DNA of 64,000 nucleotides from Zygnema circumcarinatum SAG 698-1b (GCA_037447605.1 CM074806.1:186001-250000), one strand, 5' to 3'; counted from the stretch's first letter, positions 26,759 to 58,400 are shown. The notes: generated by a model not told the origin, from the letters alone. Numbers and translations: made by a program.

Positions 26759-27880
26759 TCAGCGAGACTCGAGAGTAGAAAACAGATGTCCTGAGATCCC
26801 CATAATTCTGAAGAGGTCTGCAGGACTCAAATTAGGCAACTGTTCAATAGTGTCTGGAACAGTAGTCAAGGAAGGGCAGTCGTCAATATCCAGTGAAGTG
26901 AGACTGGTAAGCCCCCCCAGCTTCTCGGGAAGAGCGGTTAAACTTCGGCAGCCGTGCAGGTCCAAGATTTGAAGGCAAGGCAAGTTTCCAATAGAATCGG
27001 GCAGGCTCTCTAATTTGTAGCAGTCTTGGCAGTTCAATTGGATCAGTTGACTAAGATTCCCTATGCTTTCTGGTAGGGCTCTGAGTTCATGGCAGCCTTT
27101 GAGGTTGAAGTTCTTCAACCGCGTTAGTTGACCAAGCGAAGGCTGGAGATAGCTCAACTTCGCACAGCTTGAGAGGTCCAATTCCGTTAAATTTTCCAAT
27201 TGCCCGCAACTCTCGGGCAGAGTTAGCAACTCCTCAGCTCCCAAACTGAGTTCTTTGAGGTTCCGAAGGCGCCCAAAATCCGACGGCAATGAAAGGCATC
27301 CCCGAGAGTGAAAGGCTAAAGCTGTCAATTCAGACAAATCACTTATAGAGGGTGGAAGATGGAAATGCGAAGCAGCAGTTGGAAAAGGGGAGGTCCAAAG
27401 TGCTGCTACTGTAAGCTCTCCTAATCTTGAACAGCCCTTGAAAAGTCTATCGAACCCCAAATCAGTCACCTGAGCCACGCCTCTCTCGTCATCCGACGTT
27501 TCCTTCCTTTGCCCTTCCAGATAATGAATATTCAGGGACTTAAGCTGCGGGCAAGACTTCCCAATGTGCTTCAAAAGGCTGTTTGTTACCAGACTGTGGC
27601 TCGACAAGTGAAGTTGTAAGGATACCAGATGAATAAACTTGTCGAGGGAGCGCAGAACTATTGTAGAAATGTTGGGACTGCAATCCTTCAATTTTAGAGC
27701 TTGAAGAGCCTCATTGGCCAGCCTGCACCATCGTCGACACACGAGCTTGTACCGCACCCACTCTTCAGTGTTACTCACTTTCGCCATAATGGCAACAATG
27801 CATCGGTCTGATAGATCAGAGATATGTGTCGAACTGCAGTCAGTCGCCGAGTCCTCTTTATTCGATTTTCTTCCTTCCTC
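26759..27880 (-). CDS. F-box + leucine-rich-repeat protein (large coding exon; true start probably in an upstream exon near 28456)
   Basis: F-box-like ISDLSDRCIVAIMAKV...LVCRRWCRLA, then RNI-like LRRs (GKSCPQLKSLNI, VTDLGFDRLFKGCSRL), then ~6 LPxxxGxLxxLxxLxLxxCxxL repeats. The listed ORF starts at TTG, and a TTGCAG acceptor lies at ~27884. Confidence 0.8.
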   Translation of the reverse strand, partial: EEGRKSNKEDSATDCSSTHISDLSDRCIVAIMAKVSNTEEWVRYKLVCRRWCRLANEALQALKLKDCSPNISTIVLRSLDKFIHLVSLQLHLSSHSLVTNSLLKHIGKSCPQLKSLNIHYLEGQRKETSDDERGVAQVTDLGFDRLFKGCSRLGELTVAALWTSPFPTAASHFHLPPSISDLSELTALAFHSRGCLSLPSDFGRLRNLKELSLGAEELLTLPESCGQLENLTELDLSSCAKLSYLQPSLGQLTRLKNFNLKGCHELRALPESIGNLSQLIQLNCQDCYKLESLPDSIGNLPCLQILDLHGCRSLTALPEKLGGLTSLTSLDIDDCPSLTTVPDTIEQLPNLSPADLFRIMGISGHLFSTLESR

Positions 27881-48800: not shown

Positions 48801-49878
48801 TTCGTTTTCCAGTGGAGCTGGAAGTGTCATTGATCCCATTGGCATTTTTCGTTTTCCCGTTTTGAGTCTCAAGGCTTCAGAGGAGAGGAGACGCCGTACA
48901 GTCGAAGGCAGGACACTTTTGAACCTCAACGCCTGCTTTTCAAGCCGCGTTGCTATTGGGCCTGGAAGCAGAGCTCCATAGCTCATGGCTCCGTTCTGTC
49001 GTCCTTAGGTCCTTCATGATGGGTTCCCGGTGGTCCCACATGTTGTTTCGAGGCATCGCCATGAGTGAGACCCATGCGGCCATGCCATGCCACATCCATC
49101 ACAAAGTTGCAAGTCGCAAGGTTGCTGTGTGGCTTCATTGGCTTGGCGTGGCCTGGGGTGTGGACTGAGGGCAAGGGGCGTGGCTTGGCATTTGGGACGT
49201 CCAGATTTCACTAGGGTTTCCTTTATCGGCACTGATTACTGACGGTACCAACGACTGGTGGTCGGTTTCCACGTTTCCAACCATGGGTTGGATTGTAATC
49301 GCAGGCCCATGCACAAGCCCCATGCATGCATGCATGCCAAGCGCGTTCACACGACTCACTGCGATTCGTTGAAAAACGAGAATGGGCATACGTTGTAAGT
49401 TTTTGCACCATATCAGCGCATGTAATCCGTCGGTCCGATTGTTAATGTTAATGTGAGGGTCATACTTCAAACTATTTGAGTTGAGAGCGGAAACTTTCAT
49501 TGAACTCGCGAAGGCGAGGCCAAGGAAAGTTGGGTCCAGGTAGACTAGAACTTAGAGACAATATTCAACGACTCGAACATGGTACAGACAGAGCTTAACC
49601 CCCCCCCTAGCATCAAAGGGACTACCAAGTTCGCTGTGCGTTTTATCTACTCGAAACCCAATAACGAACACCTGGTGTTTGTTGTTGCTTTACCACAGTT
49701 ACAAACTAACAAGTATACACACACACGCGCACACACACACGCCATGCTTCGTAAATTTTGAGCCTCCACGCCCACCAACCCTAAAACCCTAAAACCCGAA
49801 AATGAGCACCACGAGCGGCGGCAGCAGCAGCAGCAGCGGGTGGAGGTCCGTCCGCATGGCCGGCGGCGGCGGCGGCGG

Positions 49879-52800
49879 TCAGCGCGGCACGTCCTGGGAG
49901 GTGCCGGGCGTGCAGGGGCGCGGGCCGGGGTAGCGGCTGCCCGGGGCGCAGAGCGTGGCGCCCGCGGGGACGGAGGAGGCAGCGCGGCACACGGGCCCGC
50001 CGTTGAAGCAGCGCAGCACGCCCAGGTCGCAGAAGAAGTGGCTGCTGGCGAGGGCGGTGCAGGTTGCGGCCCACCGCCCGAGGGTCAGGGTGCGGGTCAG
50101 GCTCAGGGCGTTGTTCCGGGCGGTGCAGAGGGGACACCCGGTGTCGCCGAAGTCTTCGGGGACGGCAGGAAATACGCACACCTGTTGAGAATCATTCAGT
50201 CAAAAGCAACACTCGAAAGGCGTGAGCGAGAGTGTGAGTCGCATTGATGGAAGGAGAGAAAAGGCATGGCTCAGTTTTTTTATAAGGATCCGTTATGATT
50301 GGGATTGGCATGGCTTCTTGACGAGTTTTACATAGAAAGAGAGCGTTACGCACCAGTTCCCCAGGGGTTAGGATGTCACAACGGATTCCAGGGTTCAAGG
50401 AGAAGAAGCTGAGTGCGGTAGTGCGGCCGCGGTAGAGAAACTCGCAGCCCAGCCCTACTTCGGCTTCAGTGATCATGTGGTAGTCTCCACACCGTGGATT
50501 CCGAAAGCGATTTCCGGGTTGTACGCATATCTGCAAGTACGTGTTTCAGCGATGGATGTTAATATCAGCCATGATGATGGTGGTAGTGGTGATGATGACG
50601 AGAAAGATGATGGATGATAATGATCATAATGGTGATGATTTATCACGACCAAGATGATGAAGATTGATGAGGATGACATATCAGTACGAAATCTTACAGG
50701 CAAGGTTAATAGATTTTGTCTTTAGTCAAACCAATGAAAAGTTTGATATGTCAGAATGTAGAGATTGGCTTTGTGACTGATGCATACCGGGAGATGTACA
50801 GGCAGGGGAGCCGTGGGATCGGAGCAGCTAAGACTGATCCTGGAATTGATTGAAACCAATGTCGGCACGTCCAGGATGTACGACGGATTACTGAACAGAC
50901 CTGTAACGCTTGAACAGGTGTCTCCCTGCACCCAAATCACTTCAATTCAGATGCAGAAAATAATACACATTCGTCATCCATTCATCGTTTCCTGTTAAGC
51001 TTCGGTTTTGTGAACGTGGCATGCAGTAAGGCTGGCAAACAAAGGGCACAGGTGAAGCTATCATAGCCAAAAACTGAAAAGCTGATTAGCATAGCTCCGA
51101 AAGTCTGGAGTCCCTATGATGTTACATTGCTAGCCAGTTTAGTGATCGATGTTATGGTTTCTATGGTTTTTAGGATTCTTTAGAGTTCTTTGTTGCGGAC
51201 ATACCGCTATTGTGACGTACATCACTCTGCACTCTATGCCATCAGAAGCGATCGGTCCGATATTGATGACAGTATTTTGAGGCACCCCTCCTGCTTCACA
51301 GTAGGCTTGCAAATACTGGAGAGACAAAAAAAATAAAAGAAAGCCCTCCCACTCGTCAAATTTTCGGCATTTAACAGATTTCAAGTCTTGAATGTCCTGC
51401 ACTTGTAACTTCCAAGCATAACATGCAGAAAGGGCCCAAGTCTCACATCAGATTTCAAATGTCGTATATTGCGGAGACGGAGAGGTTTGGACTCACAGGG
51501 TTGAGGTAGAAGAGGTCCTCCAAAGTCGCATTGGTCAGAAGAGTAAGTTCAGAACAAGAGAGGCCTCCGGGAGGTACCACGAAGGTCGGGTTTGAATCAA
51601 ACACAGCCGTATCGTCTGCATCATTGCTCCAAATGTAACGGTAATGATAAGAAGATGAAAGAAAATGGATACAAAAAGGATGAAGGCGAATTTTAGCAAT
51701 ACAAACTCATTTATCAGCATTGTCGTTTCTCTTAAAGATCAGCTCTCTACATATTATAGTGGATAGAAAGTAAACTCGATTGTTATCACACTCTAAGAGA
51801 TGAACTGTAAATAGAAAAATGCACATGACAAACGATGAAGGAACTAACAATTTTGGAATCCTTTGAGAAACGTTTGCTCGTTTGCGTTAGGTGTTCAGGT
51901 TTGCGCCCACCCGGAATGCAGATGGGAGAGAGGTCTTCCACTCGTGCGCCTTCGCGGAAGCCGCGCGGGAAGGAGCAGTCGCACGAGTAGCCACCCTTTC
52001 CATCGTTTACGCACCTGCTCTAGGGTTGAGGGCTCAGGGTTCTAGAATCTTATTGTTTTTTTGTGATATTTATTTCAGAACAGATTTCATCCTAATCAAA
52101 CCGTGTGGCAAAAGTAAAAGTGAGTGTGTCGTCCCTTACACGATGAACTACTCTCACAGCCTGCGGAGCATCTATTTCCGGAGGGAGGGAGGAGAGGCAG
52201 GGAGGGAGAGAGGGAGGGGAGGAGGGGGGGGGAGGGGAAGGGGAAGGGGGAGGGGGAGGGGGACGGGGGACGGGGGAGGGGGGAGGGTGGAGGGAAAGTG
52301 GGGAGGGGGAGGAGGGGGAGGGGGAGGGGGTGGGGAGTGGGGAGGTGGGGGAGGGGAAGGGGAAGGGGGAGGGGGAGGGGGAGGGGGAGGGGGAGGAGGG
52401 GGAGGGGGGTAGGGAGTGGGGAGGTGGGGGAGGGGGAAAGGGGGAGGGGGAGGATGGGGGAGCGGGGTGTGGGGAGGAGGGGGAGGGGGGAGGGGGGAGG
52501 AAGGGGAAGGGTGGAGGAGGAGGAGGGGGGGGGAGCGGGAGGGGGGGTGAGGGGGAGGGGAGACGAGCATTTACCTGCCAACACCGCATGGGTTGAACGT
52601 TTTTGACCCGCACACATCAACTGAACAATGGCACCCCACCCATCCGCTGATAAGTTGCAAACCGAGACACGGCTTTGCAGAGAAAACCTCAAACTCCGTT
52701 CATACAACTGAAGCTCCTAGATTATTTTAGAAGCAGCATCAAGCTGTTGACTTGAAGAGCAATTGCGACGAAGACAAAACCTCATCCCATCTTTGTATTT

Positions 52801-55471
52801 TCTGGATTTTCACATCCAAGGCAGTATTCAACCAACTTTATTATTTTTTTTAAGAAAAGAGAAAAAAGCTGAATAGTTGAAGGGTAAGACTCACCAAGGG
52901 TACAGACTTCATCACTTCCGGTGGTACTGGGCTGATGAATAAAGCTGAACCTGCATTTACATGTGGCGGTGGTCTGATTTATGGGAGCACAAGTACCGCT
53001 CCCGCACGGATTGTTGGCGATACCTCCATCACATGATGTCACTGCGCAGACATGCATTGCTCACGTTAGAGCAAGAGAGTGAGAGAGAGAGGGGGCGGGA
53101 GGGAATGTGAGAGGGAGAGAAAGAGATGTTACAGAGGCAAGAGACACAGAAAGGAGAGTGAATGAGCAAGAAGGGTGAGAATAGACATGGGGGAGAGGGA
53201 GGACAGAGAGAGAGAAAGGGATTACTGAGAAATGGACAGGAAGGTGAGAGACTGACCAGGAAAGTTGCGAAAATTCGGTCGCAGGGTGGGAGTAAAATAG
53301 AGAGAGTGGGGGAGAGAGAGTGGGAGAGAAAGGGAGAGAGAGAGGGAGAGAGAGAGAGGGGGGGGATTGGGACCTAAACCGTGACAGTTGACTTACCGCG
53401 TCTCCGTGGAGGGGGGAAGGGGGGTGAGGGAGGAGGCCTCCCTGGAGGTCGAGGGGGAGGCCATTTTCGAGGAGGAGGGGGAGAGCGAGGAGGGGGAGGA
53501 CGGCGAGGAGGGGGAGGACGGCGAGGAGGAGGAGAGGGAGGGGGAACGCTCAGAAGTGCTCTTGAAGTCACTGCTGTTGGATCAGATTCAGCTGTCCACC
53601 AATCAGATTTTGAGGCCCCAATTCAACGTCAAGGTTGAGAGCACTGAAAATGGTAAGTTCTTTCTCGCGTTGTATTCAAAGATAACTTTCTTAATTCTGC
53701 GATTGAAATACCATCATTTCAATTCCGACTGTATTTTTGTAGTTCTCAGGAGAAAAATTGAAAAGTTTTTTACCGAGAAGACGCCGAGACCCTCCGCTCT
53801 GTGCAACGGGAAACGGATCGATAACTGGATATATGGGATTGACCTCATACATGTTGCAAACTCCCTTCCCATACATGTCTCGTCTGAGTCGTATATACCC
53901 ATTCTCTCCCCACCTCGGTCCCCATGAATTTTTTGCAATCCAAAAGGGAATAGTTCCCTCCTGCCCATATCCGACAATGAGGAGGTTGTGGTTGGGAGTT
54001 CCGGAGCAGCCGAAGCCATGAAAAATGCCCTGAAGCCAAAGAACACCAACCACTTAAAACGAGCTTACTTTCTTTAGTTTATAAAATGTTCTTCAACCAC
54101 TTAAAACGAGCTTACTTTCATTAGTTTATGAAATGTTCTTCAACCACTTAAAACGAGCTTACTTTCATTAGTTTATGAAATGTTCTTCAACCACTTAAAA
54201 CGACTTTACTTTCTTTAGTTTATCAGATGTTTTTCGAGTTCAAAAGTTATTTGTTTAAAAAGTAGTACGTGGAGGGAGCACGGGCCATCGCTGTGGAGAA
54301 TCACAGATTTCCCTCACCCTTTGTCTTTCATTCCTCTCTCTCTCTCACCCTCTCTACTCTCTCTCTCTCCCTCCCCCTTGTGTCACTTCTCTCACACTTT
54401 CTCTCCCTCCTCTTTCTCGTTTCTCTCCCGTCCTGATGTGCAGAGGGTACTAACCCCACTGTACGTGTAGAACGCGTCAACAGCTGTGGAGATTGCAATG
54501 ATTGCAGGTTGACTGTTGACCACTTTCGTGAGTGCGAGGCCATTCTCAACAGGAACTTTCTCCCATCCTATCACTCTACTCCTGCCCGAATCGTACGATG
54601 CTCCCTCCTGCAAGGAGAAAAAAAATGACAGTTACCACTCTTAGTTAAAACCTAGAAAAACCCTCATCTCCTTTCAGAACAGAAGCTTGTGGAGTGCGAT
54701 AATAAGTAGCAAGAGAACGAGAATGAGTAGCAGAAAGTAGCCCCTAAAGGACAGGAATATGACTTGGCTAGAGATGCATGATTGACTGTTCAGAGAGTGA
54801 AATCACCTTTGCTCTGTTGCAAGCGGCAGACCTCACCTCCCCTCCAAGGGAGGGATACTCGCTGTCATAGTTTAGCCCTCCTAACTGAGCTATGTATTCA
54901 AGTGCGTCTTTGGGGTCCCCTCCCTCACAAGTAGAGCCGAAACTCGGCATGCAGTCCAACAGCTGCTGCAGAGCGAGGGGGGGACCCCCCACAATGCCAT
55001 CGTTCATATTGATCGCAATTTGCACAGCTTCTATACTTGAAGCTGCCCAGCAGGCATCTGGTGAGAGAGGGAAAGATAAGGAGGGGGGAGGGGGGGGGGG
55101 GGGGGGGNNNNNNNNNNGGGGGGGGGGGGGGGGGGAAGGGTGAAAAGAAAGAAATATTGGGTTACAAGGAGAAAGAATGGAGACATCTGTACAAAAAGGA
55201 AGGGAGGGAGGGGGAGGAGGGGAGGGGGAAACGAAAAGAGAGAGGTGTAGGATTAATGGGAGATTTTTTGTTTGTGTTTTGTGTTTTGGGACTTACAGCA
55301 GTTGAGCTGGTTGTGAACTGTTGGGCTGAAACTTCTCCAGTCGACGGATGACCGCAGAATTTGAACGCTGTTGTAGCGGAAGAATGGGGAGAAGGAGACG
55401 GCGGATATGAGAGAGCAGGAGGGAGGGAGGCATAGGCTTGCCAGAGAGAAGCGGTCGATGAATCCGGTGGT
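49879..55471 (-). CDS. Papain-family (C1A) cysteine protease fused to a Pro/Arg linker, two EGF-like and four LysM-like domains; 5' exons probably extend to ~56760 or 57364
   Basis: Thirteen in-frame GT-AG exons: 55471-55297, 55057-54807, 54607-54455, 54029-53774, 53591-53397, 53041-52895, 52620-52575, 52014-51911, 51615-51497, 51315-51205, 50925-50788, 50530-50354, 50181-49879. Motifs [26 protein letters not shown] and KNSWG; [14 protein letters not shown] and [20 protein letters not shown]; LysM-like GDTCSSV..SINS..C..LPICV. Confidence 0.85.
52190..52562. repeat. G-rich purine tract (intronic)
   Basis: Almost continuous GGGGA/GGGGGA runs in the intron that splits the second EGF-like domain. 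Confidence 0.9.
54047..54234. repeat. 47-bp minisatellite, 4 copies, at the 3' end of a protease intron
   Basis: CAACCACTTAAAACGAGCTTACTTTCWTTAGTTTATRAAATGTTCTT at 54047, 54094 and 54141, with a degenerate copy at 54188. Confidence 0.92.
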
Positions 55472-58400
55472 CTGAGGCACAAATGTTACAGGGAGGAGAG
55501 AGTGCATGTGTGTGTGTGTGTGTGTGTGTGTGAGCGAGAGAGAGAGAGCGCGAGAGAGAGAGAGAGAGGGAGGAGGAAGACGAAAGGAGAGCGGCAAAAA
55601 CAAAAGAAGCGAATAGCGCCGACCGAGTTTTTTTTTTCAATTAAAGAGGTAAGGGCGGCAACAAAGACGAAGGGCGGCACTCAGAGGAAACGTTCAAGAC
55701 TGCCAATCACTATCAACGGTGTCGGTCGTGTTGGAAACCATAAAGAGAGAGGGAGGGACACCGAGAGAGAGAGCGAGATAGACAGAGAGAGAGAGAGAGA
55801 GAGAGCGAGAGCGACAGGGAGAGAGAGAGAGCGAGATAGCGAGAGAAAGAGGGAGAGTGTCTCCTCGGACGCTCACAATGCCGAAGGGAGGAGGGCGGTA
55901 AGAGAGACGTGTGCAGTTGGCGAAGCGACACGTGTAACACATTCCCAACTCCTCACTGAAGCAGAGGTTGTACGGACAGCTCCCTCCCGCTATCCACGTT
56001 CCCGCTGAGTCGCACTTGCACCACTCTCTGTGTGAATGCAGCACAGGCCAAAAAGGAGAATAAGACGCATAATAGGAGCGAGTTAAGATAAAAAAGAAGG
56101 GATATATGCAAAACTAGGAGCAAGTAAAAGAATTTATGGGCGGAGATACAAGGCCATGCAGAGCCTTGCACCCATTCCTAAAGTAATGAAAAATGATAAC
56201 AATCTGAGGATTCTTCACAAAGCCAAGTAGACTCCTTCAGGGATGGGAGATGCGTGAGGGGAGAAAACTGTAACTGATTTGTACTTGATTTTCCGATATT
56301 GTTGATTACGTCATTGAAGCAAACTTATGCGTGGCGAGGCTGGGGACCGAACCATGTCACGACTACATAGAAACAGACAGTTACAGACTCTTCTGTTTCA
56401 GTTTAGAACTATGAAATTATAACTATAGAAGATTCCTAGAACTAAAGCGAAATGAGATGTATATGTACGTGCTCTTTTTTTTTTTTTTTTGAATGGGAGT
56501 GCCTNNNNNNNNNNCCCCCCCCCCCCCCCCCCCCCCCCCTTAATTACCTGCAGGGTATTTCGGACGAGTTGCTGACGAATGTCCCATTTTTCCTCCCAAC
56601 ACAACATGCAGTATTCCTCTACAACCCCCCCCTCCCACGGACACAATCTAATGTGAGCACAAAGCAAGGCGACTCAAAAAGCCGAAAAGCAATCAAAAGC
56701 AGCCAAATGTCCGAAGCCCTAAAGTCGCTCCATCGGCCGTTGCTTTCTTCCATGCAATGGTGGCGATCCACCCACATTCACGAGAAACCCTAAAACCCTA
56801 AAATCTGTAGTAAAAAGAATCAGAATGACTCAAAAAGCGCTTCATGTTGTATTCTGTTTTTTCCACTACAAAAGAAGGGTGAGGCCGTTCGTTCCCATAT
56901 ACCGGAAAAGGGGGAGGCCGCGTCGCGTTCCATATAAAGAAGGAGGGAGGGGGGGGAGAGGGAGAGGGAGGAGGGGGGCGAGGAGGAGGAGGAGGAGGAG
57001 GAGGAGGAGGGCGGGAGGGAGGAAGCCTTATGAGCGGTATTCGAATAGCAGGAGGAGGCGGAGGGCTGGTTGACCCAACAAGCTCTCTCCTGAAATGGCC
57101 CTCTCTCTCTCGTCCTCCCTCCCCATCTCTCTCTGTCTCTCCCTCCCCCTCTCTCCCTCTCCCTCTCTCTCTCTCCCTCTCCACTCCCTCTGAGAGCAAC
57201 TCCTCCGCGTTCCGAGTTCTATCATCGACCGTCTCGCGACCCGGACCTGCGCTGCGGAGGTCACCAGCCAATGGCATGCCTCCACGTGGACCAATCCCCC
57301 CTCCCGCCAGGATCGCTAAACCCCCAAACGCGAGCAGCGCCCAAAAGGCCCTCAACCCCGCCATGGCTTCGTCTTTTTTTTTTTTTTTTTTTTTTTAATG
57401 AGCGGGAAAAAAAATTTGAAGTGCCTAAAAAGTGTGCATGCACAATGAATATCGGCGCTTTCTTTTTATAATTTTTTATTTTTAGATTTATTTTGATTCG
57501 AGAGGAGAGGGAGCTTCGTCTTCTCTACGCGGTCGACCCCTTCGCAGCCGCGAAGCCGCCGCGAGTGACGACAAATTTGCCGCCCGGGGAATCGGGTCCG
57601 CCGACGGCCTATGAAACTTGTTGTGGGTTTGGACAACATAGGTCGGTGCCGTACATAATTGTCGGTAGAAGCCTGTCGTTGATGTCGGTGAGCGTACGAG
57701 TTCCGCAGATCTCCCATCCACGGGTCGTCGGGGGTCCCGTCTGGTCGCGAAGGCTCGAATGGGACAGGTTTGAAATATGGTTTTGTCAGACGAGAAAAGT
57801 TTTAAATTTCCTTTAACGAATATGTTTTCCTTTTTTTTGAGCGCTGATCGATGACAGGCCAAACGGAATTTGGTTAAAACTACAGCGGCTGTAAAATAAT
57901 GTTCACAATGGAACTTCACTCTGGCGGCTACATCAGAAATTAAAATGGTTACTTTTTCACTTCAGGCACCTGAAACAGTTGTTTTTTCACGAATATTGTT
58001 TGTTGTTGTTGTTTCACGAATATTTCCGACGCAAGAACACAGCCAGGATTTGTCGTTTTTTCACCATTTTTAGCTGGAAAATAAGGCTGTCAGCTGTACG
58101 CACGTGTGATTGGCGGAAAGCCATTCGAAGTTGACCGGGGTGTGCGCATAACCTCCCAAGGGAGGTTCCTTTATGCCGACCTTGTACTAAACGACAAACT
58201 GTGAGATGTGCAGTAAGTGCAGCAGGGCAATACTTCGTACGTTCGTACGCCCAAATTGGACTCTTGCTGTGCGGGTGTTCACGTGCAGCAGGATCTTATA
58301 TTTGTCGTGTATTGATAGCAAGACAAAAGCCTTGATTATCGAAGCTTCTACGAAGCCCTCCTACTAAACTGTAGGACACATGAAAATTTTCGTGTTGATT

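Follow-up and report, generated by a model that had tools for sequence, protein, structure and literature searches.

The stretch of DNA analysed here, called the window below, comprises 64,000 nt of Zygnema circumcarinatum SAG 698-1b (GCA_037447605.1 CM074806.1:186001-250000), and all coordinates are positions within it. On its minus strand, between 55471 and 49879, lies a gene that encodes a papain-family (C1A) protease domain followed by a Pro/Arg-rich spacer, two EGF-like modules and four LysM-like repeats. The protease, spacer, EGF and LysM modules are parts of one transcribed multi-exon gene and of one chain, and we are highly confident that this gene is a member of an uncharacterised zygnematophyte multigene family with the layout C1A-EGF2-LysM4. 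All exons and introns of the gene described below lie on the minus strand.

Exon map and RNA evidence

The three minus-strand frames were translated across 49700-55700 and candidate exon boundaries were checked for GT and AG. The open segments found in this translation contain papain motifs, a Pro/Arg stretch, two modules with six Cys each and four repeats framed by Cys, and every candidate boundary carries GT and AG. For the RNA test, contigs of four public sequencing runs were aligned to 49800-55750; such contigs show the presence of isoforms, not their proportions. RNA of the gene is present in three of the runs (X1, X2, and X3, from two studies), with splice joints that read CT..AC on the plus strand and GT..AG on the minus strand. 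Each of the 12 introns in the interval from 55471 to 49879 occurs as a spliced joint in the contigs of these runs. The 13 exons, A to M, sum up to 2175 nt, corresponding to 724 codons and a stop, and the phases agree at every junction. An earlier reading of the same DNA without RNA data (the sequence-only reading) had proposed one continuous spliced frame, and this is borne out by the 12 junctions, by the open 724 codons and by a single contig that runs from exon B to exon F.

The protease domain is encoded by the first four of these exons. Exon A (55471-55297) carries the motif FFRYNS, the mature N-terminus VDWR, the oxyanion Gln and Cys22 (NQLNC). Exon B (55057-54807) provides the catalytic Cys (Y-ACWAAS) and the left lobe of the papain fold, and its donor at 54806 is used in X2. 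In an exon model built without RNA data, exon B had ended at 54837 with a donor GT at 54836; the RNA joint rules this out, and with the corrected end at 54807 the chain is longer by 10 residues. The intron B-C (54608-54806, 199 nt) follows with the joint 54807/54607, the spliced form being listed in X2 only. Exon C (54607-54455) is the middle of the C1A domain, has joints on both sides and is matched by tblastn to P0029, and the joint 54455/54029 leads to exon D (54029-53774), which encodes the catalytic His (NHNLL), the Asn and Trp (KNSWG) and the end of the C1A domain.

The intron A-B (55058-55296) holds an assembly gap (55108-55117) in a homopolymer run. In X2 and X3 the contigs pass straight from 55297 to 55057, the shorter side measuring 175 nt, and the codon at this junction, split into T and AT, is the Tyr of NQLNC-Y-ACWA. 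As the gap is located inside a spliced-out intron, it has no effect on the coding frame, and the true length of intron A-B is the only thing affected by it. The motifs quoted in the sequence-only reading were all recovered, NQLNCYACWA across the A/B junction and NHNLL and KNSWG in exon D.

Downstream of the protease, exon E (53591-53397; joint 53774/53591 in all three runs) encodes a Pro/Arg-rich, partly extensin-like linker of about 65 residues. EGF-like module 1 with its six Cys is encoded by exon F (53041-52895; joint 53397/53041 in all three runs), whereas module 2 is divided between exon G (52620-52575; joint 52895/52620), which provides its first part, and exon H (52014-51911; joint 52575/52014 in all three runs), which provides the second, with six Cys in G and H together. 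LysM repeat 1 and the first strand of repeat 2 are encoded jointly by exon I (51615-51497; joint 51911/51615) and exon J (51315-51205; joint 51497/51315). Repeat 2, in which the GDTC motif is kept, continues in exon K (50925-50788; joint 51205/50925), and repeat 3, in which the GDT motif is replaced, lies in exon L (50530-50354; joint 50788/50530). Finally, exon M (50181-49879; joint 50354/50181) contains the last strand of repeat 3, the most degenerate repeat 4, a Cys/Pro tail and the stop codon (49879-49881).

The sequence-only reading had itself considered that the protease exons and the EGF/LysM exons might be transcribed as separate genes. We regard two adjacent genes, one for the protease and one for the EGF/LysM part, joined only in the gene model, as very improbable. 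Nothing was found in favour of this explanation, and the only formal gap is the lack of one contig extending across all 13 exons. The RNA junctions link both parts: the chain D to E to F to G to H to I is unbroken in all three runs, and a 1215-nt contig of X1 covers exons B to F and thereby places protease, linker and EGF1 on one assembled molecule. Moreover, P0008, an open reading frame (ORF) from transcriptome contigs of another species (SRR8128903, SRR8128907, SRR8128908) and the closest relative found, stems from contigs that are open upstream of EGF1 through a Pro/Ser-rich linker, and the same fusion is present in proteins of Mesotaenium and Closterium.

Two further features of the transcribed region were observed. 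The intron G-H has 560 nt of C-rich low-complexity sequence, of which 52095-52570 is almost pure C/T on the coding strand; it is open in all three frames as a Pro/Ser-rich pseudo-protein and yet is spliced out in RNA, so that it could mislead gene finders. Furthermore, GT..AG joints in good donor and acceptor contexts are present on the plus strand, namely 53652 to 54444 in X2 and X3 and 50917 to 51891 in X3. These joints (removing 53653-54443 and 50918-51890) point to a spliced antisense transcript over the protease and LysM exons.

Protease, linker, EGF-like modules and LysM-derived repeats

Pfam Peptidase_C1 (PF00112, cut-off 20.7 bits) is detected in exon B with 42.5 bits (E 1e-10, residues 1-73) and in exon D with 65.4 bits (E 1e-17); exon C alone gives no Pfam match. 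The best matches of the catalytic exons among solved structures are plant papain-like enzymes and cathepsin H. In the phmmer comparison with the PDB, ACW of exon B is placed on SCW, residues 24-26 of ficin, and exon D has its best match in procerain (E 3.4e-17), with His and Asn aligned. Together with the oxyanion Gln encoded by exon A, all of Gln19, Cys25, His159, and Asn175 stand at aligned positions, and NSWG provides Asn175 as well as Trp177 (procerain, cathepsin H). The C1A domain with intact Gln, Cys, His and Asn that had been read from the sequence is thus confirmed by the profile scores on exons B and D and by the alignment to solved enzymes, and the enzyme looks catalytically competent.

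The linker in exon E consists mostly of RPPPP units, among which SPPPP and SPPP occur once each. It had been described as an extensin-like RRPPPP linker; the Pro/Arg-rich spacer is indeed present, but judged by its composition it is proline-rich rather than typical of extensins. Both EGF-like modules following the linker have six Cys in EGF spacing. Exon F is 45% identical to residues 1-50 of P0008, where Pfam EGF is detected with E 2.8e-5. Exon H alone reaches E 0.035 and 14.8 bits, which is under the Pfam EGF cut-off of 21.5. The homologous EGF modules of P0008 and of P0025, the Mesotaenium endlicherianum protein ME000065S09004, pass Pfam EGF (E 6.5e-8 in P0025), and these matches, together with the six-Cys patterns, speak for the two EGF-like modules of the sequence-only reading.

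Homology of the four C-terminal repeats to canonical LysM domains is indicated by several sequence comparisons. Exon L, which with 59 residues is a near-complete repeat, has 26 phmmer matches among 1.84 billion representative proteins. One group of these are canonical multi-LysM proteins (Pfam LysM E 1e-38 to 1e-170) and a second group are algal proteins with the architecture of the window gene, for example P0025. The long low-complexity matches P0001, P0002, P0004, and P0013 were rejected, as they are compositional, with half of the query matched many times and with spurious Pfam labels. For profile comparison, each window repeat was combined with its positional homologues of the family (alignments A6, A5, A1, and A7 for repeats 1-4) and compared by hhalign with a canonical LysM profile (A2) of eight domains, all from strong Pfam LysM proteins, which were drawn from exon L's own matches and therefore bring a degree of circularity into the comparison. 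Repeats 1-4 match this profile with probabilities of 98.3, 99.0, 99.0, and 97.7%, respectively, over 39-44 columns, the E-values being 1.2e-14 for repeat 1 (exon I as master) and 6.7e-18 for repeat 2. Exon L alone reaches 94% in the profile comparison, over its C-terminal half only. A local LysM hidden Markov model (HMM) applied to single exons gives E 3.5e-7 for exon L, 4.5e-4 for exon K and 0.011 for exon I. Exon M aligns to residues 288-380 of P0008 with E 1.7e-14. Together, these comparisons argue that all four repeats are homologous to canonical LysM domains.

As proxy for the fold, the relative P0008 was modelled with a 22-row family alignment (A4). The AlphaFold model of P0008 (predicted local distance difference test score, pLDDT, 76.8) contains two small beta-rich modules followed by four beta-alpha-alpha-beta units. 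Its best Foldseek match is Ecp6 (E 1.7e-5), followed by SleL, the NFP ectodomain, CEBiP, LysM-NlpC/P60, OsCERK1 and MltD, and the N-terminal part matches the EGF arrays of NELL1 (EGF1-3) and EMR2. This predicted LysM fold belongs to the close relative P0008 and not directly to the copy in the window.

Family members and the 5' end

The sequence-only reading knew of no characterised protein with this architecture. However, the same Peptidase_C1, EGF and LysM layout is present in public Mesotaenium and Closterium protein sets, with at least six such proteins in Mesotaenium and several in Closterium, so that it is not unique. P0025 is matched by Peptidase_C1 (E 2.6e-42), EGF (E 6.5e-8) and LysM (E 8.7e-28). 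A word search with its EGF-LysM part yielded 18 proteins, of which six are from Mesotaenium, seven from Closterium and three from EukProt transcriptomes, the remainder being fungal or unnamed LysM-only proteins. Most of these algal proteins carry PF00112 and PF01476, and many additionally PF00008. Seven members that were re-scanned with Pfam have the layout C1A, EGF, LysM, with LysM scores of 1e-18 to 1e-28 in Mesotaenium. No match came from a word search with the stop-free ORF in which exon B lies, and an ESM Atlas look-up of P0025 gave no usable match. In the literature search, neither a paper on a papain or cysteine protease with LysM in zygnematophytes nor a characterised member from Mesotaenium or Closterium was found.

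To date, members of the family are known from Zygnematophyceae, namely Mesotaenium, Closterium and some transcriptomes. The window gene is colinear with P0008, P0025, P0028, and P0034 in tblastn and in alignment A3. It shares the order of C1A, two EGF and four LysM modules with the Mesotaenium proteins P0025, P0027 (ME000065S09001) and P0028 (ME000073S09330) and with the Closterium proteins P0034, P0035, and P0037. Like in the window gene, no I29 prodomain is detected in these proteins, and cysteines frame each LysM. All members examined have a motif FR[HY]AS ahead of the catalytic domain, and its counterpart in exon A reads FFRYNS. The identity between them and the window gene is about 25-45%, and their LysM repeats, in contrast to those of the window, pass Pfam and keep GDT. 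Furthermore, the N-terminal heads vary within the family; several members have a head that was not found in the window gene, for instance leucine-rich repeats (LRR) in P0027 and an L-type lectin in P0038. P0008 is colinear with exons F, G, H, I, K, L, and M, with 32-55% identity per exon and 53% over exon L (phmmer), and its LysM repeats 3 and 4 are degenerate as in the window gene. It differs in being a C-terminal fragment only, the contig breaking in the linker. In another organism a transcriptome ORF of 307 aa (P0015, Logan) has a signal peptide followed by a degenerate four-LysM module, with neither protease nor EGF; therefore, the LysM array also occurs as a stand-alone secreted protein.

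The upper limit of the gene at 55471 in the sequence-only reading proved to be a true acceptor, but it is not the start of the gene, as a contig of X3 runs 250 nt further 5'. The first 30 letters of this contig match the window exactly at 55877, followed by GT, and define the 3' end of a further exon 0 (55877..56027), for which 56027 or 56113 are candidate acceptors. Exon 0 is Cys-rich and its frame continues into exon A in phase 0. It gives no Pfam match, and it is weakly similar (tblastn E 0.15) to a pre-protease EGF-like module of P0027 (residues 264-312). Further upstream, an unverified candidate first exon (56801..57364) begins at ATG 57364 with a signal-peptide-like start (hydrophobic maximum at residues 9-19), continues as a low-complexity, Pro-rich ORF and has candidate donors at 57265 and 56903. 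For this candidate there is neither RNA evidence nor a Pfam match, and splice-site scoring and relaxed tblastn against the N-termini of the family gave no consistent exon chain from ATG 57364 to exon 0. Secretion of the protein is nevertheless probable, as EGF and LysM modules are disulfide-rich and extracellular and as the relatives P0027 and P0039 begin with signal peptides.

A second assembly gap (56505-56514) is located between the candidate first exon and exon 0. Both gaps consist of 10 N; the first lies inside a G run, while the second is flanked by a G run only towards higher coordinates, with a T run about 20 bases off on the other side. Both look like assembly breaks at homopolymers and not like lost genes. 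Short telomere-like TTTTAGGG repeats (about two copies, minus strand) are present at 49770-49800, just past the stop codon, and again at 56785-56800 in the region upstream of exon 0. Within 3.5 kb upstream, tblastn with family sequences detected no LRR similarity. The LRR region of P0027 has a weak tblastn match (E 0.003) at 26885-27199 on the minus strand, which probably belongs to a separate LRR-encoding gene elsewhere in the window. With no LRR head found upstream and GDT lost in three of the four LysM repeats, the window copy appears to be a reduced member of the family.

Proposed function and comparison with known systems

As a whole, the locus is best explained as one C1A-EGF-LysM gene of a zygnematophyte family that encodes a secreted, glycan-tethered protease, and we consider this explanation probable. 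Several observations weigh against it. Of the upstream structure only one exon end (55877) is confirmed, the start codon and the signal peptide being candidates. An I29 prodomain was found by Pfam neither in exon A nor in exon 0 or the upstream ORFs tested, a result that is provisional as the 5' end is incomplete, nor was it found in the seven re-scanned family members (E<=0.001). The intron B-C is retained in assembled contigs of two of the three runs, X1 (54454-55071) and X3 (54454-55057), and reading through it leads to a stop after 12 codons (...SIMHL*), before the catalytic His and Asn. Moreover, Pfam LysM (PF01476) does not match exons I, J, K, L, or M even at E<=10, in a scan that was run exon by exon and thereby split repeats 1 and 2. 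Only repeat 2 has preserved the GDT motif with which the first helix begins, the other three having lost it, and the local LysM HMM gives no signal on exon M alone. The four LysM-like repeats of the sequence-only reading thus stand as homologues of LysM by phmmer and profile comparison, but not as Pfam LysM domains, and three of them lack GDT. The structure prediction that had been suggested as a check likewise gave a divided answer, with a LysM fold best matched by Ecp6 in the relative P0008, but for exon L alone (9-row alignment) a model with pLDDT 63.6 and no PDB match by Foldseek. As the last strand of repeat 3 is encoded in exon M, this poor model is uninformative.

Some of these points could also mean that the window contains a copy that is decaying or largely unproductive, a family member that is transcribed but has a truncating intron retention and eroding binding repeats. 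Intron B-C with its in-frame stop is retained in X1 and X3 and spliced in X2 only, Pfam LysM fails here while it scores 1e-18 to 1e-28 in the Mesotaenium paralogues, and no LRR head was detected upstream. However, the retention may reflect normal pre-mRNA or regulation, or it may point to a copy that is expressed inefficiently, and a correctly spliced B-C junction exists in contigs that reveal presence and not proportions. Furthermore, there is one open frame across 13 exons, and the catalytic residues, both six-Cys EGF patterns and the cysteines framing the repeats are all intact. We regard decay as quite unlikely.

For the preferred explanation as a glycan-tethered protease, the following mode of action can be proposed. 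The protein would be exported to the cell exterior, with its proline-rich stretch serving to space the protease from the binding modules. Through the LysM array, the protease would be anchored to polymers containing N-acetylglucosamine (GlcNAc), such as chitin or peptidoglycan on microbial surfaces, and it could then cut proteins there. This model follows the logic of catalytic domain, linker and carbohydrate-binding module that is known from chitinases and from bacterial LysM-tethered NlpC/P60 peptidases. Being drawn from the logic of the modules and from relatives, this tethering of a secreted protease to GlcNAc polymers of microbial surfaces through LysM has in our view about even chances of being correct.

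The same modules might instead serve at the surface of the alga itself, as a wall, mucilage or conjugation-stage protease that its proline-rich and LysM/EGF modules would retain in the extracellular matrix. According to Martinez and Diaz (2008; PMC2474614), who cite Amon et al. (1998), the only physiological report on an algal C1A protease concerns Volvox VcPap-11 and its induction by the sex pheromone, and this one algal C1A protease with a physiological context speaks for such a role. Degenerate LysM repeats would also fit an altered or relaxed ligand specificity. On the other hand, outside the family the nearest LysM relatives are proteins with cysteine-stabilised LysM, several of which come from fungi, and Ecp6, a chitin-binding effector, is the best fold match. 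In addition, no GlcNAc polymer is known from zygnematophyte walls, which weighs against a role at the own surface as well. Overall, we consider it unlikely.

Going beyond the tethering on microbial surfaces, the family may comprise papain proteases without detected I29 that are built into a receptor-like ectodomain consisting of an LRR or lectin head, EGF and LysM modules, and may thus be an enzymatic equivalent, older than land plants, of LysM/LRR pattern-recognition receptors. The protease would then be positioned or released once a microbial glycan or protein is bound. This idea is tentative, and we regard it as rather doubtful. LysM and LRR ectodomains are at the core of the immunity and symbiosis receptors of land plants. 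In the algal sister lineage such ectodomains are wired to an apparently active protease and not to a kinase, and the gene family has expanded. If the LysM modules do target the protease to microbial walls, they would have been used in the manner of effectors before the origin of land plants, and the family would be a natural case of a papain enzyme that apparently works without classical prodomain. The locus described here contributes to this picture a reduced member without a recognisable head and with degenerate LysM repeats and a clean, RNA-confirmed exon map.

Fusions of papain-like proteases with LysM-type repeats are also known from chlorophytes. Zhang et al. (2009) list 'peptidase+LysM' among the green-algal architectures that were lost in angiosperms, and in Chlamydomonas the peptidase is a peptidase_C1 (PMC2728734); this fusion resembles the window gene in joining a papain-family protease to LysM-type repeats. 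A word search with the LysM region of P0025 gave no chlorophyte relatives, and the C1A-LysM fusions of chlorophytes and zygnematophytes may therefore be independent in origin. VcPap-11 reportedly consists of a cysteine protease domain, an extensin-like module and three chitin-binding repeats, and it is said to be wound-induced as well. It is not known to contain EGF modules, and its repeats number three, not four.

Among systems outside the algae, fungal LysM proteins are the only sequence matches. The best fold matches of the P0008 model, Ecp6 (PDB 4b8v), CEBiP, CERK1, and NFP, share the cysteine-stabilised LysM repeats with the window gene; these fungal LysM effectors and plant LysM receptor ectodomains, however, lack an enzymatic domain, their role being to bind glycans or to serve as receptors. 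The bacterial LysM NlpC/P60 endopeptidases (Thermus thermophilus, PDB 4uz2, 4xcm), whose LysM domains are among the Foldseek matches of the P0008 model, are similar in that a cysteine peptidase is held on a GlcNAc polymer by LysM. They differ in that the peptidase is not of the C1A type, the LysM domains are N-terminal, the substrate is the stem peptide of peptidoglycan, and neither EGF modules nor a proline-rich stalk are present. The RD21-type proteases of land plants consist of a C1A domain, a proline-rich hinge and a Cys-rich C-terminal granulin extension. The window gene resembles them in the succession of C1A domain, proline-rich hinge and Cys-rich C-terminal extension, whereas in RD21-type proteases the extension is a granulin domain instead of EGF and LysM modules and the I29 prodomain is present.

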